A stretch of DNA of 64,000 bases from Auanema rhodensis (lineage: Eukaryota; Animalia; Nematoda), in contig OZ059899.1 of the NCBI GenBank assembly GCA_964057225.1, positions 9,548,001-9,612,000 on the forward strand. The letters are read 5' to 3'. A model generated the notes under the pieces. That model did not search any database. It was given only the letters and a program-made list of their open reading frames with translations, and had not been told where the DNA came from. A program made the translations under genes and the position numbers. This document shows positions 1 to 46,005 of this stretch, one piece after another; position 1 is the first letter of the stretch, and each line of letters begins with the position of its first letter.

Positions 1-3000
1 GGCATTAACGTAAGAAGTTAATGCTTCTTCCAGCGTTCTATGTAGTCGTTCCACTTGACCATTTGCGTTTTTGTAGTATGGCATAGTTGTGTGATGTTCC
101 GATCCAAGGTTATCGCACATGCTTTTGAATTCGTGTGAGACAAAGTTTGATCCATTGTCTGTGATGATTTTCTTTGAGGGTCCGAAGACATAGAATAAGT
201 GTGTCATAATAGCTGATACTATTTCTTCTGATGTCTGACGAATTAATGGTATCGCTATAATCCATTTGGAAAATGCGTCCTGTATAGATAAAATGTATCT
301 ATTATCCTTTGCAGTTCTAGGTAATGGTCCTAGTATGTCCATGTGAACTCGTACCCATGGATGTGTCACTGTTGGGAAGTTTCTCATTGGTTCAACTGTG
401 GCTTCATGTGGGTTATTTTTCCTCTTTGCACAGTCGAGACATCTGTTCACATATCTTGTGATATCATCCTGTATTCCTGTCCAAGTGTACCGTCGCAAAA
501 TGGAGTCTTGAGTCTTATTGATTCCAAGATGTGCTCCGAGAATGGGGTCTTTGTGGAATTTCTCGATAATTGGTGTGGTAATTGATGAGTCACTTGGCAG
601 AATAGCTCGTGGAGTTTGTAGAGCTGATTTGGGTTTAGCGTATAGAACATCATTCAAAACAATGTATCTATCCGTTAGTTGTGTCCCAGCGTTGTTATTT
701 GACAGCTTCTCTTTAGTTTCTTTGATCCATTCTGTGTCGTTTTGAATGGTCCTTAGGTCTGTTACTGTTGAGATTGTCGAAACTTGATGGGATGTTGTCT
801 TTATTGTCGGCTTCTTTTTCCTTTCTTTTGTTTCGTTAATTTCGTCCTCAAAGTACTTTGATAAAGCGTCGCAAACGCTATTAAGGCGTCCTGGGCGATA
901 GATAATTTCAATGTCATATTCTTGGAGTACTATTTGAAATTTGGCTAATCTTCCAATAAGATCTTTCCTCGTCATAAGACTGGTTAAAGGTCTATGATCG
1001 GTAATAATTTTGATCGGTGCCCCTAGGATGTAGGTACGAAATTGGTGAACCGCAAAGGTTAGAGCTAAGGCTTCAATCTCAATGGGGGGATAGTTCCTTT
1101 CTGCTCTGTTCAGTTTACGGCTAGCGAAAGCTATTGGGTGCAGTGGTTCTCGATCGTCCGCGGATTGCAATAAAACTGCTCCTACTGCAATAATGCTTCC
1201 GTCGCTTTCGACTACATATGGCCGTTTTGCTCTAGGCGCTTGGAGGACTGGTGCTTCGCAAAGTGCTTTCTTTAGGTGTTGAAAAGATTTTTCTTCTTTG
1301 TCTCCCCATGTGAAGGTTTTATCCTTTTTTGTGAGGTCATAAAGCGGTGATGCAATGCCTGCGGCATTCCTAATGAATCTCCGGAAGTAGTTTACAACTC
1401 CCATGAATGCTCGAACTCCTGTGATTGATTTTGGTCTTGGATAATCTTGAATTGCTTTTACTTTCTGAGGGTCTGGTTTTATTCCTTCGTGTCCAACAAT
1501 GAATCCTAGGAATTTGACTTCTTGTTGTCCAAAGGTACATTTCTTAAGCTTGATTTTCAATCCTAGCTCTGCTGATGCGTTCAGTACTTCGGCGATATCT
1601 TGTAAATGTTTTGTCGTTGATTCCGATATGAGAAGTAGATCGTCGAGATAGACGAAGAGCTTGCATCGTACGTGTTGTTGTAAATATCGTACTGCATTTT
1701 GGAATGTGTGTGGAGCTCCGCAGAGTCCCATCGGCATTCTGCAGTATTGATAAGTTCCGCTCGTAGTAGTGAATGCGGTGAGGTGTCTATCTTCTGATCT
1801 AAGAGGGATTTGAAAGAATCCAGATACTAGATCAAAGTTACTGAAGATACGTGCTCCGGCTGCTAGGTCCAAGATATCTTGAATGTTAGATATAACGTAG
1901 ATTTGTTTTTGCGTTATTGCGTTAAGTGCTCGAAAATCAGTCACAAATCTATACGTTTTATCCTTTTTCTTGACCAATATTACGGGACTGGTAGTCATAG
2001 AAAAAGATGGCTCAATTATTCCTTGTTCTAACATTTCCTCCACTTGTTTTTCTACTTCTTCTTGTTGTGATAGAGGTATTCTGTACGTGATCTTGAAAGA
2101 TGGAACTTTTCCTTCGATGATCGGGATGCTATGTTCCACTGGTCCTTTGAAAAGTCCGATATTTCGATCCTCGTTCAAGAAAGCTTCCTTATTTCTAAGT
2201 ACTATTTTCTTTAATTGTTGTCTTTCTAATTGAGTGAAGATGGAATTTGAGACATCTAGATCTTTTATGAAATCATCTGGGAAGAATGGTAGTTGATCTT
2301 CCCATCTTGCTTCTGGTGGTACATATTGTCCTTTTTGCTCCTCCGTGTTTTTGGGGATAGCATAAGCTGTTCCAATGCCTTGGTTTGTCTGGACTTCGAT
2401 TGTATCCGAAGAGATATTTGTAGCAAATATCTGGACTCCATATCCTGTTGGGGTGAAAGTTGTAGGCGCAAAACTCATTTTTCCTGCTCGTTGTGAGCTT
2501 CTAATGAAAGCTTGTTCGAATGAGGCGGGATCATTTACTTCCAAAGTTAGAGATCTTGTTTCTCCGGGGTAAAATTGTTTAGTTTCCAGACTAACAACGT
2601 GTGTAATTGTGTGTTTTTCTGTCCATGCATTGTAGTTTTGCGCTAGAGGTACCGTGGTATCTCCAATCAGCAATGAATTTTGCAGAGGGCGTAAGGATGT
2701 GAGGATTCCTTCTCTGTTGAGTGCTTCAATAAAATCTATTCCAAGCAATATTGGTGCTGGGCAATGATTGTCGGAAGATATCAATATTTTGTGGTCAATT
2801 TCGGTCTTTCCAATTATTATTGGCAGTCTTGTATATCCTAGGAAGGAAAATCGAGACTTGTTTGCTACAACAGCTGTAGTTTTCTCAGCGACCATTTTTG
2901 CTGCCGGTAATTGATTGAAAGTGCTCTCTTTCATATATGAAATTGATGCACCTGTATCCCATAGTGCAGTAAAAACTTGGTTGTAAATTGATATGGGTAC

Positions 3001-3040
3001 GAATGGTAATCGGGATCCCCCAATGTAGTTTATCTTTGAT
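1..3040 (-). CDS. pol: pol region: aspartic protease, reverse transcriptase, RNase H, integrase (open off the left edge)
   Basis: Manual translation gives LWDTGASISY (~2950), RFVTDFRALN, FSNFDLVSGFFQIPL, MPMGLCGAPHTFQ, YLDDLL (~1650), RNaseH ESDGS..VGAVLLQ / EIEALA / TDHRPL, and IN FHKDPILGAHLG..CLDC, VHMDILGP, TDNGSNF, NGQVER. Same frame as 4956 downward; absent from the ORF track, consistent with no stop before the edge. Confidence 0.95.
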
Positions 3041-6000
3041 TCTTTAATAGCGTACCTGGGCAGATAGGTTAGCAGATCGCTATCTGTTAATGGTGCATCG
3101 GGATCATAGCGTGAAAGTGGAGCATGGTAGTTGTCTTGTGTCGCTCTTCTTAACGGCTGAAGTTCGGTCTCTTGGGCTGGATGTTCTCTTCTTTCTTCAT
3201 CATCTTCTTCGATATAATTGATGGGAATTCTTGTGACACGTGCGTATATTTTGATTCCGTAAAACAGCGCGGTGATGAGTCCTATTATCACGATGATTGC
3301 GCCGATTGTGGCAAGTGTTCTTAATAGCCAGGCCTTGAAAGTTTCTCCAATAAAAGTGAAGAAGCTGGAAATTCCTTCTTTTGCCGTGTTTCCGACGATG
3401 TCTCCCACTACGATAGGAATTGTTATGGCATTTTCAAGGATGTTGAGTGGATTCAGACTGATTCCTTTCTTGTTGTTAAATATAGGTTTCAATCTTCCTG
3501 GCAAAGTGGCTTGTAGAGAGGCTAGACTGGATCCGTATGAAATAGCGAGTTCAAACGGGAATGAAGATTCCGTGAGGTTGGCATATATGTTGGAGTTGTT
3601 GAATTTTATGTGATCGATTTTGATCGACGTGAGTTCGTCCGCAAATGATAGGTTCGTCACATTTAATGTTGTGTTTTCCTTCATCCATTGGTCGTTTAAT
3701 TTATATGGATCCGTTGTAGCCATCATGCAGTCGATTCGTCTGCCCATTGGTGAAATATCACGTGTTCCAGGTATTAAAAACAGTTCTCCATGATGTTCTG
3801 TATCTACTGGTGTTTCCATGTAACATGTTCCGTTTCTTTTGTGATCCGAGTAGATTTTTGTTACGTGGATAGGTGTGCAAGGCATTACGTAGATAAGGTG
3901 TTCAGCAACGAATTTAGCTGATATATCCTGACGTCTAAGCATTGTGCGGATACCAATAGTTGGGTTGATTTGTAGAATGGCCCACCACGTAAGGAGTTGT
4001 TTGTTTTGCATCCTACAGATGTCCTTTTTCGTTTTTTGAAACGCCTTCAAAATTTCTTCTTCTAGTTGCGAGGTTGAATATTGTAGATGCGATTGTGTAT
4101 CCAGTTGACGTAATTGTTCATCATATTTCTGGATGATATCATGTCTTGTACGAAGAAAATTAACGTGTGCTTGCTGTCCTATGTGAGATTGAACTTCTCT
4201 TGCTTGTTGAGGTGTTGTGGCGGCTCGTTTGGTTGTTGTCCTTGGCTCTATCACTGTTGAAGAGATTTGCGGAATTTCTGTTCGCGTTACAAGCTGTGTT
4301 GGTAATGAGAATGGCGTTGTCGTAGCTTGATAGTAGTGATATCTTCTTGGAGTAGTTGTAGAGCCTGGTGATAATGTTCTGGGAGTGTGAAAAGGTTTGG
4401 GAGTAGTTCGAAAAGTTGTTGTTGTAGTCGCGTGCGTAGTAGAGCTTGTAGTGCTTGCGGAAGTCGTGGTAGTCGTAGTCGTTGTTGTTGAATACGTGAG
4501 GGAGTCGATTAATTCAAGATATGTTCGTTGAAATCTCTCGCTTTCTTCCTGTGAAATAGTTTTAGTCGTTGGTGTACCACGTGGCAGTCCAAAGTTCTGA
4601 GCTAGTCCTTTAAAGATGATTGCGTAATTAGGAAAAATAATCCTTGGACTAGTTGATTCCTCTTCCAATTTATTCCACTTTCTGCTCTCTTTTTCGCGTT
4701 CTTCTGTTGATATATGTAGCAGACGATTATGTGATGCTATATAGTCAATAAAGTTTAATACTTCGTCGATTTGTGTGTAAAACGAAGTGTCCATTCTAGG
4801 AGTTGTTCTTCTCGACATCCTAGGTGGGTATAGTTGAAATAAATATTCTTCTAATGAAGGAATCGTTTCTCCTGTTGCTAATACTGCGGGAGTTTGTGCG
4901 ATTTCAAATGCAATGTCTCTCGCTCGCTCTAAGTAGTCTCCTGTGCGTTTTCCAACTTATCGGCGAACTCCTTAATCGTGATTTGTTTACTCAGTTTTTC
5001 TGTGAGCTCAGATGGTAGGAGATGCGCGATAGCAATTTCTGTTGCTAGGAGAATTTCTGCTTTTGCCAGCGCATGTAGAATGGCGATATTAGTGTCGTTG
5101 TAGTTGTACCATAATAGTGTTTCCTTGATCGCGATTGCGTCTAACTTGAGGAATTTTGTAAGTCCTACGTGAATACTGGAAGTTTTCAGATAGTCTATAA
5201 GACTGTAAGAATTATCCAATCTTTTCCGGTTGCGATACTTCTGATACATTGGAATAATTCCTGTAGAGCTGTCCGTAAGACGTAACGATGGATATATGGT
5301 GATATTGAAAAAGCGTGTAGGGTATTCTTGTGGCGCTTTCCTTTTCTGTCGTCTTGGAGTCTCTTTAGGTGGTATATGAATGTATGTACCACTATTCGTT
5401 GTATTCATGTATATCCTTTCCTAAACATCGAGTTGCTATGTTATCCGGTTTCTGGTCTTGGAGGATTAATGCGCTCTGTATCTCCGAGATTAGGACAGTG
5501 TCGTTGTTGACAAGTGCTGAGAAGTTTCCTAAGGAGCTGAAGTCACATTCGTGATGGTCGTGAGGTGGTGTCCAAACGATTATGGCATTGTGCGTTGTAC
5601 AAGTTCCTGCTTTCTTTGCACATCCTTCCGTGTTGAGAAAAAGGTCTGATATGATGATATCGTCATGTAGACAAGTCATCATTCCTCTTTCTAACGTTAA
5701 TCTTGGAGTTGTGGTGCAAGATGTAGACCAAAATGAGTAAGACTGATTGTTTAAAGGTAAAGGTGCCTTAAATAGTCCTGGAGCTGTACGTACAAGATTT
5801 GTATCCATATGTCTTCTTTCTTGTATAGCTTCCTTACATTCCTTGAGAGTCGCGGCTTCGACGTAAAGTAGAGTGATATTGTTTTCTCTAATGAACAGTC
5901 TATCGTGAGCACATGTTCTGTAGATTTCTTTGGAGCATTTCCAAGCCTCCCATTCCTTGTAATGCATGTTTTCTGCGAATAATTCGACGTTAGTAATTTG

Positions 6001-6153
6001 AACTCCATCCTTGTGTATGTTTTCTGAGCATAAAGTAGGGGGTTCGAGAAAGATGCCTCCTCGTGTTCCGGTGCATAGATGGTAGGTGTTGTCTGCGTGA
6101 CAAGGAAGTATTGTCAGTGCCATGATGGAAAGGAAGAGAGGTGTGAATGGAAG
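3041..6153 (-). CDS. env: envelope glycoprotein, class III fusogen (herpes gB / chuvirus G-like); two frameshifts (~5400 and ~4950)
   Basis: Internal signal peptide LPFTPLFLSIMALTILPCHA (6153-6094), Cys-rich ectodomain with N-x-S/T sites, RRQKR furin-like site (~5345), Thr-rich tract (4500-4210). gB-like DICRMQNKQLLTWWAILQINPTIGIRTMLRRQDISAKFVAEHLIYVMPC..CYMETPV..C (4030-3730). TM LATIGAIIVIIGLITALFYGI (~3320-3252). Confidence 0.85.
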
Positions 6154-7779
6154 TTTCTTGTTGCTCGTGCGGGGTGTTTCCTTGTTAACTTGGTTAACAT
6201 GGAATCGTACTGATGGGCTTCTTGTGCGATTTCTGTAGCGCGAATTAGGTCCATATGATTCATGGTGATCTCTGTTCTGGTATCTTCGATCGTACTGGTT
6301 TCCGCGATGATAGTTGTTGTTGTATCTGTTATCATAACGGTCGTTATACCTATTATTTCTGTGTGGGCTACGGTAGTTGTTTGGTCCTCTTGAGCGTGGT
6401 CTGTTATTCCTGTTCCTGTCGTTGTATTGATGGTATCTTCCTGTTCTTCTTTCATCGTTATGACGGTATCCTCCTCGTCTTTGGTGCCATGGTTCTTGAG
6501 GTCTTTGTGGATGTGAGGAATTGTCGTGTGGCCTGGATGATAGATGTGGTGCCGGTCCTCTATGAATTTTATCACGCTGTGGAGCTCTCATGTGATTGAT
6601 GTGCTCGTTATTGATATTCAAATCATCTAGTCCATCGGTTAAGTTGTTGATGAAGGAAGAGGGGTCCTCATCTGCTTCAACGGTTTCAGCGATTGTGACG
6701 GCTGATTCAAAGGTGGTTGGGCTTCGATTATTGACGTGCGTACGTAGTTGTTTCCGTAATCCACCGAGGAAAGCTACACGTTATATACGTTCATCAGCAT
6801 CGGTGTTCATATCGCTTGCTTCATAAGCCAGATTTCGACAGCGTTGTGCAAAATGGTTGACAGTTTCACTCTCTCCTTGCTTCATGTGAGTGAGTCTGGT
6901 GAACGCGGCATCTCGTTTCTCTTGAGGTTGAAGTTTGAGAGACAAAATGCGCTTTACGTTATTCCATCCTTGACGTATTTCGTCCGGAGTTATGCAACGT
7001 AAAGCATCGGCTGCTTTGTCCGTCCCCAACAATAGATAGAGGTGCGACAGACGCTCAGCCATAGGTACTTGCAACGCGTCAAAATAACCTTCCAATCTCC
7101 TCATGTAGAGGTTAAAAGGTACTGCTCCATCATACAAGGTGGGTTTATGGTGGCGAATAGAAACAGTGTTCGTGGGTAGCATGCGGAAATTAGAGTTGTT
7201 TTGGGTTTGATCATTGGAGTTTGGGTGGTCATCCATCCGGTCAGTCATCTGAGCGATTTTTCTCTTCTCTGCAACATTCAAATTGAAATTGGTGGTTACT
7301 TCCGACGGAGAAGATACAGGAGAAGAAGATTGCCCATGTAATGATTGATCGGATGAAGAGGGAGAATTTCGAGGAAGAGGAGAAGAAAGAATAGCAGTAT
7401 TTGGGTATGAAGATAAAATTTGAGAATAATCTTTACGAGGGGAAGTATTTGTGCTAACATTACTAGAGCTTTTGATAACATTAGAAGTGCGTTTTGGAGT
7501 TTGTTTGCTAATAGACGCTTTAATTTTACTTAGAGTAATAGCGTGGCGAGAAGTTTTAATAGCTGTTGTGCCTATTTTCTTCGCGGGGGTACCCGGTATA
7601 GCGGGTGGTTTCTTTGCAGCAGTAGGTCGGCGCTTCGTGTCCGGCTCATAAACATTTGGAGGTCCTCTTTTTCTTTGATTCCGCTCGAGTACTGGCTCGA
7701 CGTGCGTATCATTACCGGGGGCTGCGCTCTGTGGATTTGTTTTATCCTGCGGAGGATTTTTACTCTTCGAGTCCGTCAT
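6154..7779 (-). CDS. gag: gag (capsid plus R/N/Y-rich basic tail); one in-frame TAA at 6781-6783
   Basis: PTLYDGAVPFNLYMRRLEGYF and MKQGESETVNHFAQR retrotransposon gag motifs. The frame continues after the TAA as RVAFLGGLRKQL..PTTFESAVTIA into ORF 5392..6621. Confidence 0.88.
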
Positions 7780-10566: not shown

Positions 10567-10639
10567 GGCCGCGTGGCGCAATGGATAACGCGTCTGCCTA
10601 CGGAGCAGAAGACTGTATGTTCGAATCCTGCCGTGGTCA
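10567..10639 (+). pseudogene. degenerate tRNA-Arg(ACG)
   Basis: GACTGTATGTTCG (T-stem mismatch); the last base and oligo-T terminator are deleted. Confidence 0.8.
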
Positions 10640-11574: not shown

Positions 11575-11647
11575 GGCGGCGTGGAGCAATGGATAACGCG
11601 TCTGCCTACGGAGCAGAAGATTGTAGGTTCGAATCCTGCCGTGGTCG
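11575..11647 (+). pseudogene. variant tRNA-Arg(ACG), acceptor and D-stem mismatches
   Basis: GGCGGCGTGGAGCAATGG (C4G, C11A). Confidence 0.7.
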
Positions 11648-14074: not shown

Positions 14075-14147
14075 GGCCGCGTGGCGCAATGGATAACGCG
14101 TCTGCCTACGGAGCAGAAGACTGTATGTTCGAATCCTGCCGTGGTCA
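14075..14147 (+). pseudogene. degenerate tRNA-Arg(ACG), duplicate of 10567
   Basis: Same lesions, offset 3508. Confidence 0.8.
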
Positions 14148-15082: not shown

Positions 15083-15155
15083 GGCGGCGTGGAGCAATGG
15101 ATAACGCGTCTGCCTACGGAGCAGAAGATTGTAGGTTCGAATCCTGCCGTGGTCG
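15083..15155 (+). pseudogene. variant tRNA-Arg(ACG), duplicate of 11575
   Basis: C4G, C11A. Confidence 0.7.
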
Positions 15156-35270: not shown

Positions 35271-35308
35271 GGCCGCGTGGCGCAATGGATAACGCGTCTG
35301 CCTACGGA
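35271..35308 (+). pseudogene. 5' half (nt 1-38) of tRNA-Arg split by the composite MULE; ends in TSD GCCTACGGA (35300-35308)
   Basis: tRNA sequence stops at the GGCAAACTGAC TIR. Confidence 0.93.
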
Positions 35309-35497
35309 GGCAAACTGACAAGTTTACCAAACTTTAGGTTTACCAAACTAGGTTTACCACGCAATAGACAAGTTTACCATAGTTATATGGTATACCAGGT
35401 TTACCAGGTTTACCAAATTATACCTAATATTAATTTGTGAACACTTTGCAAGGTTTACCAAGTTTACCAAATTCATCAAGTATACCAAGTTTACCAA
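35309..35497. repeat. TIR (outer, A) built of GT(T/A)TACCA sub-repeats
   Basis: Inverted match to 39320-39500 and 45782-45961. Confidence 0.9.
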
Positions 35498-35878
35498 AAA
35501 AATATCTTTATACTAAGTATACTAAAATACAAAAGTTGTAGTTTGAAATTTTATGTTTTTTTCAAATTAGAGATTATACTATCAGGAAAAAAATTTTTAC
35601 ATTAGTTGAACATGAAGTGTGAAAAGAATCGAAATTTAATTTTTATAAAACTTTCCGTTTCGCATGTTTTCTTTTTGTGGAGCAGTTGCATACATGAAAA
35701 GTGTTCATTAAAGATGTTAAGCAATCGTTCTAACTGACCTTTTAATAATGATTCTCAGTTTGGTGAGAGTGTGTGATGGATCAATATTGTAAATGAAATC
35801 AAATATATAGTTTGAAATATGTTAGTTCACTCACCTTATTCAAGTTTATTAGTATCCAATTTTTGTAGCTACGGCACT

Positions 35879-38769
35879 TTATGAAAGTGAGTAGTAGCGA
35901 TCCTGTTGTCCTGATGGGCCTGGAATCAAAATCTCTTCATCTGAATCGGCTGTCGTACTGTAATAAAAAATTATTTCGGGACAGTAGTGTTAAACTTACT
36001 CCATGTCATAGTAGTTTCTTTTACGGTTCGTTTTGGAGAATTGCGAACCAAATCGTCTCTGATCGAATTTAGACCCGTCAGCTGGTCTCAATTGCTCGGA
36101 TTGCACGTCTCTTGCTGTTCTCTCGTTCCTTTTCCGTTCCAGGTTTTCAACAATTGCATTTTTTTTATTTTCATTCTCCAATGATATGAAAACAGCTAGT
36201 CTGAAACAAAAATATACTTAATTGTACTATAAATTTAAGAAACCTGTGATGACATAGAGCGTGTTTCGGACAATTTCGCTGAGAACATCCTGGGCTTGAG
36301 CATACAAGCTCATTATTAACTTCATTGACGCATCCCAATCTGAAAAATTAATAATAAACTTTATTACGAATTTTCTCAGCTTACGCTCCAGTACTGTCTT
36401 TGGTAAAATATATACCCGCTTTTGCAGCAGGAAATACCTCCAAACGCTGAACAGTTTCGAAAAACACGTCAGCATTATTAGTTCCTACTGGCTCACTCAT
36501 CCATGAGGGATAGTTCGACAACGTATTTTCAAAAATGAAGTCATTCAAACCAAAAAGTTTGAGTTTGTTCATTTTCTCAATACGTGTCATTACTAACCAC
36601 TCGTGGTTCTCAACATGAAAGTGAGTGGCCAGTTTGTCCGATTTCTGATGAATGGCTCCAATTCGATCTTTTATTTCTTCTATAATGAAATTAATTTTTT
36701 CTTTTTTTTGAATAGTTTAGTTACCTTCATGTAATTGCAGCATTTTTTCTAAAACCTGGTGAGCAGGAATTGGATGAGGCATTCTTGCTTTTAACTGAGC
36801 GTTTCTCGACTCTAGCAAGTTAGTGGAAAAAAATTGCTGGCTTTGCCCAGCTCTTAATTTTTGAATCAAACTATTTGTTTGATACAAATCTTCTTTATTA
36901 GCAATGAGCCTGAATCCAAAAAACATTAGTTAAAATGTTGATAAAACAAACCATTGTCGAGTTTTCTCTCCACAATTCATAATAATATCCTGCATTTTCT
37001 TCTCATATTCGTCACGAGTTAGGGACGATTAAGCCCCTTTCCTCATGATTGTTCCATATTCAGTCTTAAAACATAAAAATAGTGTTCAAAAACAATATCA
37101 AGTATACCTCTTTTTTTCTCCCGAATATTTTATGCAGGATATGTTCCTTTCTCTCAGCATCATCGTCTTTGCCGAATGTGCTTTTTATATTCTCCATTCG
37201 GTGCACGGAACATCTTAGCGGCACAGCATCTTTTAAAAATGATCCCTAAAATAAAAAACAATTAAACCTTATGTAAAAAAATTTCTTACAGTGTTGTATG
37301 CTTTGAAAGCATCTTCACCATCATGGCACAAACCAGCTACTTTTTTGTTCCTTCCATATTGAGATAGCATCTTGTTCAAATATGCCGAGAATGCTTCATG
37401 ATTGCCAGCGTTTTTGGTACTATGTACCATACATGCAAGCAATATGCCAGCGTTTTTACCAGATTTTTTTGACCTAAATTAACATTATAAAAAAAGATGT
37501 AACTAATATAATCTATACTTACGTGAACATATCCGAAACTCCGAGGGCTAGAGTGACATATTCGCCACTACTGATTGAAAATGTAGTATCAATCATTATG
37601 ATACTTCCTATTGTTGGTAGAGCTCCGGAAGCATTCACTTGATTCAAAATTCGCACTGGAAGATTAAAAAAGTTTCAATGCCTCAATTACAAAATACTCA
37701 CCAAATGCTTCCTTTGCCTCCTGTTTAGGCATGTATTGGAGATTGTCCACAAAGCGAAGATGGTCGTTCATATCTTCAACCGTTGGCAAGCAAGCACAAA
37801 AATGCTTGAAAGCCGTCGGGTATCCGACAATCTGGCAGAAGGCAATACCACGATCTTAAAAATCATTACTATTAAATTGATAAAAACTTAATTTAACCTG
37901 TTCTTTCCACTTTGATTGGTTCCATGTGCTCCACTTTCATACTCGCATTCACGAATCTATCAACGAGTTTATTGACATCGCTTGGCGATCTTTTGCCAGT
38001 ACCCGACTTGATGTGGGTGCTGACACTTCGGGCAAGACTAGTCAGCTAAAATAAAAAAATGTAGAAAAATAGCAAGCAATTTGTGCTGATATGCAGAATT
38101 AAATGAGACCCATACCTGACTGGAGCTAATTTCCATATTTTTTAGCACTTCCTTAGCAGCAGCTGTTGTTCTGTTTTCCAGAACATTTTTAACTTCTATG
38201 CTGACAGAGGGCAGGATTCTCTGTTTAGCGGGCACAAAATTTTCCAAAGATTCCTAAATATAGTACATAGAGCAAAAAGCAAAATAAGAAAACTTACCTG
38301 CACGTCATAAATGATAAGCACCGGCTCAACAATTTTTTCCTTGCCTTGTACAATCATATGAATCTAAAACAAAAATTAATTATATATCTTAAATGAACAA
38401 AAAACCTCTTTAGTAAGATCCATATCTGGTTTCTTACAGCGGATAGTTCTGTAAGAGTATTCGGTGCATTCATCCTTCGAGCAAAGGATGTATTGCCCGT
38501 CAACCAGTTTACAACCTCTCGAAGAGGTCTTGTTATTGATAGCAGGCAGACCATTGCCTCCTGAAACAAATTATATATAGAAATTTGAAAATATAAAACT
38601 GACCTTTTCTGTTCCATGGAACAAAGATATCCCGAGTGATATCCTTGTAGACAATAAATTGTCTTTTTGAAATCCTGAAAAAATTTTTACCCTGATGCAT
38701 GCCCAATAAATCAGGCATGCAATCAAGAACAGCAATGCTGTTATCGAAAATAAGTTCAAAAGCATTCAT
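35879..38769 (-). pseudogene. spliced MULE DDE transposase, ~15 exons, premature TAA at 37029-37031
   Basis: IMIDTTF, CHDGEDAF, RCSVH (CxxH), STNLLESRNAQLK, C-terminal CSSPGCSQRNCPKH (SWIM-like). GCT TAA where copy B has GCT CTA. Confidence 0.85.
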
Positions 38770-39319
38770 GATTGAAAGATTGAGAAGGTTGCGTTAAACT
38801 TGAAGTTTAAAATTGGTTTGATAAAATCAAATTATTTTTCATGTTTTAGATGATGTTCACAATTTTTGCTTTTTTCATGAACTATATATGACGCTCAATT
38901 GTCATCCAATTGATGGTAGGTGTCATTAATATGGTATACCGGAGGGTTCAACACGCGTTATAATCAACTCATGTTATATTTTTCTTAAATATGAACAATA
39001 TTTTTAACACTTATAAGACAATCTTGTCAAAAATTAATATTTATTTTTATTTAATTGTTCTATATTAGTCTACTTGAAACATTTTAGAAATTTCATATGA
39101 ATTAAGGTTCTTTGATAATAGATTCTATTTCAGATTACAAGAATTTTGAGATTAGGATGATTTAGATTTTGATTTTTCTTACTGTATCTTTTTAAAACTT
39201 ATATTTTTAAAATTACTCATCAATCATTTCAAAAAAAGCTTACATTTTCATATCTTTATCGTATTTGTTTGTTATACCTGGAAACTTCTTCAAAATACTC
39301 AAAACTCTTTTTAATCTAT

Positions 39320-39500
39320 TTTGGTATACTTGATAAATTTGGTAAACTTGGTAAACCTTGCAAAGTGTTCACAAATTAATATTAGGTATGCTTTGGTAAA
39401 CCTGGTAAACCTGGTATACCATATAACTATGGTAAACTTGTCTATTGCATGGTAAACCTAGTTTGGTAAACCTAAAGTTTGGTAAACTTGTCAGTTTACC
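39320..39500. repeat. TIR (inner, A)
   Basis: TGGTAAAC sub-repeats. Confidence 0.9.
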
Positions 39501-39550
39501 ACAATCTTCTGCTCCGTAGGCAGACGCGTTATCCATTGCGCCACGCGGCC
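39501..39550 (-). pseudogene. tRNA-Arg nt 1-50, cut by the MULE-A inner end
   Basis: Reverse complement GGCCGCG...AGAAGATTGT abuts the TIR. Confidence 0.92.
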
Positions 39551-41725
39551 TTGTTCAACAAAGATTTCAGAAACTCTTATGAAAAAAAAACTAAGACTAT
39601 TGTGATGAGAGAAATTAAGAGAAAAACTATGGAGCTGACATTACATTTTTCTACAATATCACTAGATTCGATATCATTGATATCCTGGAAACGTTATTCC
39701 TTTCCTTTTTTTATATCAAACGAGAGTTTTATGTAATCATAGAGAAATCAGTATCAGTCTGTTCTGTTGGAGAACTGTAAGACATAAAATTTCAATCTAA
39801 TAGGCTCTTTATCGAAGTAAATGTATAAGTTTAAATTGGATATCTAACAATCTTTTTCATTTTATTTCTTATTGTTTGTTTTAAAGTAGGAAAAACTAGT
39901 TCTTTTCTTTCTAATTTCCATCCCAAATGCTTTCGAATTCCAGGAAAATATATACGGCCTTGTTCACCTAAGATTTCAGAAACTCTTATGAGAAAAAAAA
40001 CTAAGACAATTGTGATGAGAGAAATTAAGAGAAAACCTATGGAGCTGACATTACATTTTTCTACAATATCACTAGATTCGATATCATTGACATCCTGGAA
40101 ACGTTATTCCTCTCCTTTTTTCATATCAAACAAGAGTTTTATGTAATCATAGAGAAATCAGGATCAGTCTGTTCTGTTGGAGAACTGTAAGACATAAAAT
40201 TTCAATCTAATAGGCTCTTTATCGAAGTAAATGTATAAGTTAAAATTGGATATCTAACAATCTTTTTCATTTTATTTCTTATTGTTTGTTTTAAAGTAGG
40301 AAAAACTAGTTCTTTTCTTTCTAATTTCCATCCCAAATGCTTTCGAATTCCAAGAAAATATATACGGCCTTGTTCACCTAAGATTTCAGAAACTCTTATG
40401 AGAAAAAAAACTAAGACAATTGTGATGAGAGAAATTAAGAGAAAACCTATGGAGCTGACATTACATTTTTCTACAATATCACTAGATTCGATATCATTGA
40501 CATCCTGGAAACGTTATTCCTCTCCTTTTTTCATATCAAACAAGAGTTTTATGTAATCATAGAGAAATCAGGATCAGTCTGTTCTGTTGGAGAACTGTAA
40601 GACATAAAATTTCAATCTAATAGGCTCTTTATCGAAGTAAATGTATAAGTTAAAATTGGATATCTAACAATCTTTTTCATTTTATTTCTTATTGTTTGTT
40701 TTAAAGTAGGAAAAACTAGTTCTTTTCTTTCTAATTTCCATCCCAAATGCTTTCGAATTCCAGGAAAATATATACGGCCTTGTTCACCTAAGATTTCAGA
40801 AACTCTTATGAGAAAAAAAACTAAGACAATTGTGATGAGAGAAATTAAGAGAAAACCTATGGAGCTGACATTACATTTTTCTACAATATCACTAGATTCG
40901 ATATCATTGACATCCTGGAAACGTTATTCCTCTCCTTTTTTCATATCAAACAAGAGTTTTATGTAATCATAGAGAAATCAGGATCAGTCTGTTCTGTTGG
41001 AGAACTGTAAGACATAAAATTTCAATCTAATAGGCTCTTTATCGAAGTAAATGTATAAGTTAAAATTGGATATCTAACAATCTTTTTCATTTTATTTCTT
41101 ATTGTTTGTTTTAAAGTAGGAAAAACTAGTTCTTTTCTTTCTAATTTCCATCCCAAATGCTTTCGAATTCCAGGAAAATATATACGGCCTTGTTCACCTA
41201 AGATTTCAGAAACTCTTATGAGAAAAAAAACTAAGACAATTGTGATGAGAGAAATTAAGAGAAAACCTATGGAGCTGACATTACATTTTTCTACAATATC
41301 ACTAGATTCGATATCATTGACATCCTGGAAACGTTATTCCTCTCCTTTTTTCATATCAAATAAGAGTTTTATGTAATCATAGAGAAATCAGGATCAGTCT
41401 GTTCTGTTGGAGAACTGTAAGACATAAAATTTCAATCTAATAGGCTCTTTATCGAAGTAAATGTATAAGTTAAAATTGGATATCTAACAATCTTTTTCAT
41501 TTTATTTCTTATTGTTTGTTTTAAAGTAGGAAAAACTAGTTCTTTTCTTTTTAATTTCCATCCCAAATGCTTTCGAATTCCAGCAAAATATATATGTTGA
41601 CAACAAAAAAACTTCTTAAAAAACGTTTTGTTCAACTGTGAATTTCTTATGACACATTGCAAAAATAATCGTTGAAAAAGATAAATTCGATTTTTATGAA
41701 TGACAAGTGAAATGAAAAAAATTTA

Positions 41726-41795
41726 CGACCACGGCTGGATTCGAACCTACAATCTTCTGCTCCGTAGGCAGACGCGTTATCCATTGCGCCACGCG
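41726..41795 (-). pseudogene. tRNA-Arg nt 4-73, cut by the MULE-B inner end
   Basis: First 3 nt replaced by the TIR; also a T63A change. Confidence 0.9.
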
Positions 41796-41960
41796 GGTAA
41801 ACTGACAAGTTTACCAAACTTTAGGTTTACCAAACTAGGTTTACCAAGAAATAGACAAGTTTACCATAGTTATATGGTATACCAGGTTTACCAGGTTTAC
41901 CAAAGTATACCCAATATCAATTTGTGAACACTTTGCAAGGTTTACCAAGTATACCAAATT
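41796..41960. repeat. TIR (inner, B)
   Basis: GTTTACCA sub-repeats. Confidence 0.9.
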
Positions 41961-42526
41961 AAACAAAATAGATTAGAAAGAGTTTTGAGTATTTTGAAGA
42001 AATTTTCAGGTATAACAAACAAATATGATAAAGATGTGAAAATGTAAATTTTTTTTCAAATTATTGATGAGTAAATTTGAAAGTATAAGTTTTAAAAAGA
42101 TATAGTAAGAAAAGTCAAAATCTAAATCATCCTAATCTCAAAATTCTTGTAAACTGAAATAGAATCTATTATCAAAGAACCTTAATTCATATGAAATTTC
42201 TAAAATGTTTTATCTAGACTGATATAGAACTTATTAATAAAATAAATATTAATATTTGACAAGATTGTCTTATAAGTGTTAAAAATATTGTTCATATTTG
42301 AGAAAAATAAGTTCATAAGTTAAACATAAGTTCATTATTACGCGTGTTAAACCCTTCGGTATACTATATTAATGACACCTACCATCAATTGGATGACAAT
42401 TGAGCGTCATATATAGTTCATAAAAAAAACAAAAATTGTGAACATCATCATGAACATAAAAAATAATTTGATTTAATCAAACCAATTTTAAACTTCACGT
42501 TTAACGCTTACCTAAATCTTTCAACT

Positions 42527-45388
42527 ATGAATGCTTTTGAACTCCTTTTCGATAACAGCATTGCTGTTCTTGATTGCATGCCTGATTTATTGGGCATGCA
42601 TCAGGGTAAAAATTTTTTTAGAATTTCAAAAAGACAATTCATTGTCTAGAAGGATATTACTCGGGATATCTTCACTCCATGGAACAGAAAAGGTTAGTTT
42701 TATATTTTCAAGTTTCTATATATAGTTTGTTTCAGGAGGCAATGGTCTGCCTGCTATTAACAACAAGACCTCTTCCAGAGGTTGTAAACTGGTTGACGGG
42801 CAATACATCCTTTGCTCCAAGGATGATTGTGCCGAATTTACTTACAGAACCATCCTCTGTAAGAAACCCGATATGGATCTCACCAAAGAGGTGTTTTGTT
42901 TATTTAAGATTTACAATTAATTTTTGTTTTAGATTCATATGATCGTACAAGGCAAGGAAAAAATTATTGAACCCGTTTTAATAATTTACAACGTGCAGGC
43001 AAGTTCTCTTATTTTGCTTTTTACTCTATGTACTATATTTAGGAATCTCTGCAAAACTTCGTGCCCGCGAAGCAGAGAATATTGCCTTCCGTTAGCCAAG
43101 ATGTCAAAAATGTTCTGGAAAACAGAACAACAGCTGCTGCTAAGGAAATGCTCAAGGATTCTGAGATCAGCTCTAGTCAGGCAAGTGTGAAAGTTTCATG
43201 TTTTTTCTACATTTTCATTTTTAGCTGACCAGTCTTGCTCGCAGTGTTAGCACCCACATAAAGTCGGGCACTGGCAAGCGATCACCCAGCGATATCAACA
43301 AGCTTGTTGATAGATTCGCAAATGGCAGCATGAAGGTAGAGCATATGGAGCCAATTAAAGTAGAAAGAACAGGTTAAATTTTATTTTTATTTGTTTTAAT
43401 AGTAATAATTTACATTCTAGATCGTGGTGTAGCGTTCTGTCAGATTGTTGGATACCCAGCAGCTTTCAAACATTTTTGTGCGTCATTGCCAACGGTTGAA
43501 GACATGGATGACCACCTCCGCTTTGTTGAAAGCATTCAATATTTGCCAAAACAAGAGGCAAAGGAAGCTTTTGGTGAGTATTTTATCATTGAAACTTAAT
43601 TTTTTTTCATATTTCAGTGAGGATTTTAAACCAAGTAAATGCTTCTGGAGCCCTTCCAACAATAGGCAGCATTATAATGACTGATACGACGTTCTCAATC
43701 AGTAGTGGTGAGTACATCACGTTAGCTCTTGGTGTATCCGACATGTTTACGTAAGTTTTCATTAATCATATCTTTTTTTAAAATTTTGTATATTCAGGTC
43801 GAAAAAATCTGGAAAAAATGCAGGCATAATGCTTGCATGTATGGTACATAGTACCAAACATGCTTCCAACCATGAAGCTTTCTCAGCATTTTTAAATAAG
43901 ATGCTCTCACAATATGGAAAACACAAAAGAATCGCTGGTTTGTGTCATGATGGAGAAGATGCTTTTAAAGCATACAATACTGTAAGAAATTTTTTTACAT
44001 AAGGTTTAATTGTTCTTTATTTTAGGGATCATTTTTAAAAGATGCTGTGCCGCTAAGATGTTCCGTGCACCGAATGGAGAATATCAAAAGCACATTCGGC
44101 AAGGACGATGATGCTGAGAGAAAGGAACACATCCTCCATAAAATATTTGGGAGAAAAAAAGAGGTATACTTGATATTGTTTTTAAACACTATTTTTATGT
44201 TTTAAGACTGAATATGGAACGATCATGAGGAAAGGGGCTCTATCATCACTAAACCGTGATGAATATGAAAGGAAAATCCAAGATATTGTAAGGAATTGTG
44301 GAGAAAGAACTCGACAATGGTTGGTTTTTTTTTTAATTCTTTTATTTTTTTTTAATTTAGGCTTCTTACCAACAAGGACGATTTATATCAAACCAATAGT
44401 TTGATTCAAAAATTGAGAGCTGGGCAAAGCCAACAATTTTTTTCAACAAACTTGTTGGAGTCGAAGAATTCTCAATTGAAAGCTAGAATACCTCACCCTA
44501 TTCCGGCTCATCAAGTTTTAGAGAAAATGCTGCAACTACATGAAGGTAATCAAAACATATTGAAAATAACTAGTAATTTTGTTATAGAAGAAATTAAAGA
44601 ACGAATTGGAGCCGTTCATCAGAAATCCGACAAACTGGCCACTCATTTTCATGTTGAAAACCATGAGTGGTTAGTAATGACACGCATTGAAAAAATGAAT
44701 AAGCTCAAACTTTTCGGTTTGAGTGATTTCATTTTTGAAAATTCGTTGTCAAGCTATCCATCATGGATGAGTGAGCCAGTCGGGACCAGCAATGCGGACA
44801 TGTTTTTTGAAACTGTTCAGCGTTTGGAGGTATTTCCTGCTGCAAAGGCAGGCATATATTTCACCAAGGACAGTACGGGAGCTTAAGCTAAGATTTTTTA
44901 ATTTGAGTTTATCATTGTTATTCCAGATTGGGATGTGTCAATGAGACCAATAATGAGCTTGTATGCTCCAGTCCGGGATGCACGCAACGAAATTGCCCTA
45001 AGCATGCTCTATGCCAACACAGGTTTCTTAAGTTTGAGAAACAAAATATTATATTTTTGTTCCAGGCTAGCTGTCTTCATATCGTTAGAAAACGAAACAA
45101 AGAAAAGAGCGATCGTGGAAAATCTGGAACGAAAAAGAAATGAGAGAACAGTTCGAGATGTACAAGCTGAGCAATTGAGACCAGCTGACGGATCAAAGTT
45201 TGATCACAGAAGATTTGGTTCTCAATTTTCGAAAACGAACCGTAAGAGAAACTACTACGACATGGAGTAGGTTTCAAATACCTCGATTTGTAATCAATTT
45301 TCATTATAGCTCAACAGCCGATTCAGATGACGAGATTCTGATACCAGGGCCAGGGGGACAACAGGAACGCTACTACTCACTTTCATAA
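42527..45388 (+). pseudogene. spliced MULE DDE transposase, ~15 exons; TAG at 42647-42649 and GT>TT donor at 44883
   Basis: IMTDTTF, CHDGEDAF, RCSVH, STNLLESKNSQLK, CSSPGCTQRNCPKH. Exon frame is supported by mostly synonymous differences from copy A. Confidence 0.85.
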
Positions 45389-45781
45389 AGTGCCGTAGCT
45401 ACAAACAAAAACAAAACAAAAACAACAAGAGCATTAATAAGGTCAGTAAACTAGCATATTTAAAATTTAATATTTCATTTCATTTACAATATTGATCCAT
45501 CACACACTCTCAGCAATTTGAAAATCATTATCAAAAGGTCAGTTAGAACGATTACTTAACATCTTTAATGAACACTTTTCATGTATGCAACAGCTCCACA
45601 AAAAGAAAACATGCGAAACAGAAGGTTTTTTAAGAATTAAAATTTCATTTTTTTAACACATCATGTTCAATTAATATAAAATTCTTTTTCCTGATATTAT
45701 TATCACTACCTTGAAAAAAAAACATACAATTTCAAACTACAACTTTTTGTATTTTGGTATACTTAGTATAAGGATATTTTT

Positions 45782-45961
45782 TTGGTAAACTTGGTAAATT
45801 TGGTATACTTGGTAAACCTTGCGAAGTGTTCACAAATTAATATTGGGTATACTTTGGTAAACCTGGTAAACCTGGTATACCATATAACTATGGTAAACTT
45901 GTCTATTTCTTGGTAAACCTAGTTTGGTAAACCTAAAGTTTGGTAAACTTGTCAGTTTGCC
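45782..45961. repeat. TIR (outer, B)
   Basis: TGGTAAAC sub-repeats ending GTCAGTTTGCC. Confidence 0.9.
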
Positions 45962-46005
45962 GCCTACGGAGCAGAAGATTGTAGGTTCGAATCCTGCCGT
46001 GGTCG
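45962..46005 (+). pseudogene. 3' half (nt 30-73) of the split tRNA-Arg, starting with TSD GCCTACGGA
   Basis: Continues the tRNA begun at 35271. Confidence 0.93.

Follow-up and report, generated by a model that had tools for sequence, protein, structure and literature searches.

A probable composite transposon of two Mutator-like elements in a tRNA-Arg array of the nematode Auanema rhodensis

From a 64-kb stretch of contig OZ059899.1 of the nematode Auanema rhodensis (positions 9,548,001–9,612,000; hereafter the window, to which all window-wide counts refer and whose own numbering is used for every position below), we describe a 10.65-kb block in which two related transposable elements, A and B, lie in opposite orientations on either side of a piece of host DNA, the cargo. 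This A–cargo–B block is probably a composite transposon, or macrotransposon, that inserted as one unit into a transfer RNA (tRNA) gene for arginine. Indeed, it brings together two whole elements with their own termini, a single target-site duplication around its outside, a target gene that is restored when the block is removed, inner flanks that look like orphan insertion half-sites, and a cargo that is foreign to the surrounding array.

Anatomy of the block and its junctions

From about 10.5 kb onward, the window is a tandem tRNA-Arg(ACG) array with 30% G+C, in which 27 uninterrupted tRNA-Arg genes, all on the plus strand and 0.6–4.3 kb apart, are separated by spacers made of a 410-bp satellite in variable copy number. 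The block interrupts a further gene of this array. At its left junction, positions 1–38 of a tRNA-Arg (35271–35308) give way to an element tip, GGCAAACTGACAAGTTTACC, at 35309; at its right junction, the reverse complement of the same tip ends at 45961 and is followed by GCCTACGGA and tRNA positions 39–73. The 9 bp of GCCTACGGA form a perfect target-site duplication, with one copy at 35300 and the other at 45962, and we could thus recover at both places the split tRNA-Arg and the duplication common to the outer ends of A and B that a first-pass annotation of this DNA had reported. When 35309–45970 is deleted, one GCCTACGGA being kept, the rejoined gene is a tRNA-Arg(ACG) identical to the commonest copy of the array, with the usual upstream flank and the T-run downstream flank. 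Moreover, GCCTACGGA occurs once per gene in 27 of the 27 uninterrupted copies and twice only in the interrupted one, so that these 27 copies serve as paralogous empty sites. The span of 35300–45970 given by the first-pass annotation was correct, and the insert proper can be refined to 35309–45961 (10,653 bp) plus one 9-bp duplicate. It consists, in this order, of element A (4192 bp), an inverted array unit (2295 bp), and element B (4166 bp, inverted with respect to A), and its parts and immediate borders are as follows:

35271–35308, plus strand: 5' part of the interrupted tRNA-Arg(ACG), positions 1–38, including the left duplication copy GCCTACGGA at 35300–35308
35309–39500, minus strand: element A, 4192 bp, a complete, putatively Mutator-like element, with its outer tip GGC (gene-downstream) and its inner tip GGT (gene-upstream)
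35309–35488, plus strand: outer inverted terminal repeat of A, ~180 bp, with ~9 copies of the subterminal motif GTTTACC
39321–39500, minus strand: inner inverted terminal repeat of A, 97% identical to its outer repeat
39501–41795, minus strand: cargo, 2295 bp, one array unit inverted with respect to the surrounding array, spanning tRNA position 4 in one gene through position 50 in the following one
39501–39550, minus strand: cargo tRNA-Arg fragment, positions 1–50, whose GAAGATTGT ends against the inner tip of A
39546–41594, minus strand: 410-bp satellite of the cargo, 5.0 copies, 99% alike, with cargo-private variants
41727–41795, minus strand: cargo tRNA-Arg fragment, positions 4 to ~72, beginning with CGCGTGGCG against the inner tip of B
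41796–45961, plus strand: element B, 4166 bp, complete, of the same family and inverted with respect to A, with its inner tip GGT and its outer tip GGC
41796–41960, plus strand: inner inverted terminal repeat of B
45780–45961, minus strand: outer inverted terminal repeat of B
45962–46005, plus strand: right duplication copy GCCTACGGA at 45962–45970, tRNA-Arg positions 39–73, and T-run terminator

The limits of the two elements are set by a 20-nucleotide tip motif that occurs exactly four times in the 64 kb (0.02 occurrences expected), the inner boundary of B being ambiguous by one G. The third nucleotide of the tip is C at both outer ends (GGC) and T at both inner ends (GGT), and these four matches bear out the earlier description of the outer ends as both of the GGCAAAC type and of the inner ends as both of the GGTAAAC type. 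A aligns with the reverse complement of B from first base to last at 85.5% identity, with no near-identical tracts between them. Within each element, the inverted ends are ~180 bp long, 95–97% alike, and studded with the motif GTTTACC, all 34 occurrences of which in the window fall in the four element ends (8–9 per end). In an alignment of these four ends, both A ends carry A-specific bases, both B ends carry B-specific variants, and a 9-bp segment is found in both A ends and is missing from both B ends; because such lineage variants are common to both ends of each element, A and B are each a coherent unit rather than a recombinant. In the same alignment, the base at nucleotide 3 (C or T), like all sequence past about column 181, tracks the type of the end and not the lineage, and both outer ends are of the gene-downstream type.

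At the inner ends, tRNA sequence continues right up to both tips: ACAATCTTC (39501), next to A, is the reverse complement of tRNA positions 42–50, and CGCCACGCG (41787), next to B, that of positions 4–12. No partner duplication is in place for either flank, as had been noted before their identity as parts of tRNA genes was found. We read GAAGATTGT as the retained half of the original duplication of A and CGCGTGGCG as the retained half of that of B, in which case the two inner flanks would be the half-sites of two ordinary insertions into consecutive tRNA genes 2248 bp apart.

Read in the orientation of the array, the cargo between them starts at position 4 of one tRNA, takes in the spacer downstream of it and then five 410-bp repeats, and stops at position 50 of the following tRNA. 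Its gene-to-gene period of 2248 bp matches that of the local units (2242–2250 bp), and its donor therefore had the same architecture. At the sequence level, the cargo is 96.4–97.0% identical to the local 2.25-kb units, when two local units are 99.7% identical to each other, and it holds 20 blocks of 25-mers found on neither strand of the remaining 53 kb, compared with 1–6 such blocks in each of seven local control stretches. The tRNA fragment at 41727–41795 also bears a private T-to-A change in the T-arm (CCAGCC). The first-pass annotation had described the cargo as inverted and endowed with private variants, and both features hold: TCATATCAAACAAG occurs three times and GTTAAAATTGG four times in the window, always within the cargo and at 410-bp spacing. 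Since these variants recur at this spacing in a satellite that is 99% homogeneous, they were fixed by array homogenization elsewhere and not after arrival. All in all, the cargo came from an array region other than that of its present neighbors.

The transposase gene and its affiliation

Six-frame translated pieces place a gene on the minus strand of A (~38769 down to 35879) and on the plus strand of B (~42527–45388). With one exon as a query, we retrieved a 629-residue protein of Auanema sp. JU1783, hereafter P0001 (E 2e-9), which aligns collinearly with B over ~590 residues. The predicted gene has at least 12 introns of 40–54 nucleotides with TTTCAG-like acceptors, conserved in A and B; this intron style, like the origin of P0001, the best protein relative, agrees with a nematode host. 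Over 620 aligned codons, A and B differ with a nonsynonymous divergence (dN) of 0.043 and a synonymous divergence (dS) of 0.78, that is a dN/dS of 0.055, with 91% amino-acid identity, and they therefore diverged as functional lineages and were not copied in place. Each of them nonetheless carries one premature stop, at different sites (TAA at 37029–37031 in A, TAG at 42647–42649 in B) that both fall where B aligns with P0001; these stops were counted solely in the twelve exon segments of the dN/dS estimate (original exons 1–11), the automatic gene model being unreliable around exons 11/12. Judging from their reading frames, A and B are probably each inactive alone. Beyond these segments, a Cys/His-rich stretch, GCVNE..NNELVCSSPGC.QRNCPKHALC.H, is conserved in A and B (44907–45140, plus strand, and 36174–36347, minus strand). 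It sits in another frame than the simplest model of exon 12, so that the gene model is unsettled there, and it is probably a C-terminal zinc-finger exon reached via a very short intron of ~35 nucleotides.

With regard to the family of these elements, Mutator target-site duplications measure about 9 bp (range 8–11), and the outer duplication of the block, at 9 bp, lies within this range; the long terminal inverted repeats of A and B likewise agree with Mutator. A, B, and P0001 all conserve the motifs MTDTTF, CHDGEDA followed by RCSVH, and TNLLESKN, which are consistent with a DDE triad spaced by ~72 and 129 residues in P0001 and with the CxxH expected of Mutator after the second D. This CxxH motif is also found in hAT, P, Kolobok, and Dada (PMC3706591) and is therefore not diagnostic of Mutator alone. 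Among nematode elements, Tm1 has a 9-bp duplication too (PMC3169594).

Profile searches were less telling. When ten raw reading-frame pieces of B and P0001, whole and halved, were compared with Pfam, no MULE, Transposase_mut, or other transposase family was matched, the sole match being DUF7747 at the N-terminus. The 18,950 models of NCBIfam gave a single match, to IS256 transposase (E 0.006, 15.5 bits), far below the cut-off, and neither a sequence search nor a small profile search of PDB chains returned a match. A structure of P0001 predicted by AlphaFold2 without an alignment had a mean predicted local distance difference test score (pLDDT) of 32, too low for a fold search. We call the family Mutator-like on the basis of its architecture, its catalytic motifs, and the sub-threshold IS256 match; the label of Mutator-like element (MULE) proposed by the first-pass annotation stands on these same grounds and finds no counterpart in Pfam.

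As a matter of fact, the family also has points in common with Dada, whose DNA transposons lie inside tRNA and small nuclear RNA genes and encode a DDE transposase with C/DxxH after the second D (PMC3706591). Dada elements, however, lack terminal inverted repeats, and each of their families inserts at one fixed site in multicopy small RNA genes, with duplications of 6–7 bp (PMC3706591), whereas the family of A and B has 9-bp duplications, inverted ends of ~180 bp, and three different sites in one tRNA, which rules out this superfamily.

Relatives of the predicted transposase are few: an exhaustive protein search with a 176-residue exon as a query yielded four weak relatives, the best at 34% identity, and the contigs of three of them hold no tRNA and no usable flanks, while a word-based protein search with P0001 returned only the self-match. 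P0001 is the sole relative of full length, and its contig (CALQYR020003942.1, Auanema sp. JU1783, 1–3319) is essentially the element alone, with inverted ends of more than 100 bp. This element opens with GGT on the side upstream of the gene and with GGC on the downstream side, an asymmetry that matches A and B, and a second called gene at 2744–3142 may be a mis-split C-terminus.

Proposed origin of the block and competing explanations

From this anatomy, we infer an order of events, a joint use of the two outer ends, and a transposase acting in trans. Two cut-and-paste elements of a single family, characterized by 9-bp duplications, inverted ends of ~180 bp, and a DDE transposase, would have inserted independently into two consecutive tRNA-Arg genes of a donor array, B into positions 4–12 (CGCGTGGCG) of one and A into positions 42–50 (GAAGATTGT) of the next, in opposite orientations and with their gene-downstream ends outward. 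A transposase, probably supplied in trans, would then have paired the two outer ends rather than both ends of one element, and the A–cargo–B block, excised or copied, would have integrated at positions 30–38 (the anticodon loop) of another tRNA-Arg, thereby making the new 9-bp duplication GCCTACGGA while the outer halves of both old duplications remained at the donor. Such a joint move of two prior insertions would explain at once why one duplication encloses the outer ends, why the inner half-sites lack partners, and why the cargo is foreign and inverted, either orientation being equally likely on insertion. As the ends are 95–97% alike, two of the same type could plausibly serve as a substrate, as they do in Tn5 and Tn10; the case itself indicates that two like ends probably suffice for this family. 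The proposal of the first-pass annotation, namely that two elements lying close together in another array segment were moved by their outer ends, is supported in that every junction fits it and the cargo is foreign.

Some considerations weigh against this scenario. Within the 64-kb window, the composite is present in a single copy, known from one assembled sequence, and the footprint that it would have left at the donor (tRNA positions 1–12 joined to 42–73) is not there. Besides, the predicted transposase of both elements is interrupted by a premature stop, so that either a helper was needed for movement or the stops arose afterwards. Lastly, the case against an origin of the right-hand end by repair or conversion is largely one nucleotide (the C at position 3) together with parsimony.

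An unlikely alternative in our eyes is that single elements inserted at GCCTACGGA in both orientations, and that ectopic recombination then built the outer junctions and swapped the inner region. Some targeting does exist, given that every insertion in the block sits in a tRNA-Arg body, and mismatched flanks do arise, as in zebrafish, where many copies of Dada in tRNA genes have flanks that stem from different genes (PMC3706591). Yet the three recorded insertions lie at three different sites of a 73-bp gene, which speaks against exact site specificity and weakens the objection, raised by the first-pass annotation against its own proposal, that elements of this family might routinely insert at exactly GCCTACGGA. 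Neither A nor B is a mosaic at its ends, each having its lineage variants at both; two gene-downstream ends cannot come from one element; the cargo is foreign to the local array; and several coincident events would be required where the insertion of a composite requires one.

It is very unlikely that the block was copied in during repair, in which case an element resident at GCCTACGGA would have suffered a break that was repaired from an ectopic A–cargo–B template annealing in the inverted terminal repeat, and the outer duplication would be that of the resident. Cut-and-paste excision is ordinarily followed by gap repair, and the similarity of the inverted ends is enough for annealing. This explanation nevertheless predicts a right tip of the upstream type, GGT, when the tip found is GGC and the sequence adjoining it is of the downstream type. 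It would also still need A–cargo–B to exist elsewhere, and thus adds a step and removes none.

We likewise give very little credit to an assembly artifact, whereby reads of different repeat copies would have been misjoined inside the array or the elements. The locus is indeed embedded in near-identical tandem repeats spanning at least 53 kb, a setting that is hard to assemble. However, the four junctions are base-precise at the element tips, the outer pair rebuilds a tRNA with a 9-bp duplication, the arms, just 85% alike, do not resemble those of a palindromic read chimera, and the sequence of A and B is effectively unique within the window.

The remaining candidates were rejected: a local inversion by recombination between A and B would have put GCCTACGGA at the inner ends and a cargo of local type between them, an intramolecular attack by the inner ends predicts that other ends would bear inverted duplications, an interpretation as one element with very long arms does not agree with arms that are complete gene-bearing elements with inner ends of their own, and a palindromic read artifact would have arms ~100% alike and not 85%.

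tRNA genes as targets and parallels in other systems

The three insertion sites recorded in the block (35300–35308, 39501–39509, and 41787–41795) all lie in tRNA-Arg bodies, respectively at positions 30–38, in the anticodon loop, at positions 42–50, just 5' of the B box, and at positions 4–12, overlapping the A box. As the tRNA bodies, 28 in number and each of 73 bp, cover ~5% of the array (~42.8 kb), the chance that all three insertions would fall in them under uniform insertion is of the order of 1e-4. This suggests that tRNA genes are targeted without a fixed site, possibly under the direction of RNA polymerase III; alternatively, the elements may favor G+C-rich DNA, of which these genes are the only source at hand.

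Other copies of the gene vary along the window. Those at 11575–11647 and 15083–15155, two copies within a 3.5-kb higher-order repeat, differ by substitutions at positions 4 and 11 (GGCGGCGTGGAGC); these fall inside the 9 bp that B would have used at the donor, which may be chance. Those at 10567–10639 and 14075–14147 bear substitutions in the T-arm, no longer possess the T-run terminator segment (flank ...GTCAtttcacttg), and are likely pseudogenes within the array. Upstream of the array, the window begins with a retroelement-like stretch (1 to ~8 kb, 40% G+C), where 1–7779 is strongly skewed for G and T and contains two long reading frames on the minus strand (5392–6621 and 6781–7779); a word-based protein search with the 409-residue frame of this stretch found no relatives.

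Composite transposition is central to gene mobility in bacteria, where Tn10 and Tn5 consist of two inverted IS10 or IS50 copies around a cargo. The architecture of the A–cargo–B block is that of Tn5 and Tn10, and in this sense comparable events are known and no new principle is involved: two complete inverted elements surround unrelated DNA, like outside ends would be used together, and one 9-bp duplication encloses the block when none is common to the inner ends. What sets it apart from them is its nematode host, an intron-containing transposase gene of a different family, flanking copies that are 15% different, and a cargo that is a tRNA/satellite array unit instead of a selectable gene.

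In eukaryotes, the documented cases of composite transposition are to our knowledge limited to a few systems, for the most part genetic, such as maize Ac and Drosophila foldback elements. In the account of maize Ac/Ds macrotransposons given in PMC9910405 (citing Huang and Dooner 2008; Wang et al. 2022), the host DNA lying between two nearby cut-and-paste elements is mobilized by their outer termini in units of 10–28 kb, comparable in size to the present block, with one duplication or footprint for each unit. Ac/Ds differ from it by belonging to the hAT superfamily and by making 8-bp duplications, and the Ac structures described in that account have one 5' and one 3' terminus outward (PMC9910405), whereas both outer ends are of the same type here. 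In the collection of papers searched, none of the 14 that use the term “macrotransposon” deals with a Mutator-type element.

In Drosophila, the “transposing elements” of Ising are chromosomal DNA moved between two foldback-type elements (PMC6431247), and foldback-like elements with 9-bp duplications and Mutator-type transposases occur in nematodes (PMC3169594). Unlike the elements of Ising, which span hundreds of kilobases and were defined cytogenetically, the block measures 10.65 kb, is resolved to the base, comprises two coding-length elements, and involves tRNA gene bodies as targets. Pack-MULEs and Pack-TIRs also hold host DNA between Mutator-type ends; however, these are single elements with two ends whose interior has been replaced by captured fragments (PMC8277862, PMC6431247), when the block has four ends, two whole elements, and putative insertion half-sites at its inner ends.

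The block thus offers a natural animal case, resolved to the base, in which two older insertions would have made one joint move with a cargo that can be told from its new surroundings, and it provides a concrete, testable mechanism for moving and inverting units of tandem tRNA/satellite arrays. The first-pass annotation had gone further and seen in it a route for spreading and inverting arrays, which is an extrapolation from one event. In this regard, the targeting of tandem genes would make close pairs of elements, and hence composites, likely: if the family aims at tRNA bodies lying 0.6–4 kb apart in tandem arrays, element pairs would form often. On this basis, composite formation might even be systematic in the genome of A. 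rhodensis, with pairs shuttling array units between arrays or domains in either orientation, although we hold this to be rather doubtful. If it were true, transposons would provide a means of seeding, mixing, and inverting tRNA/satellite arrays.

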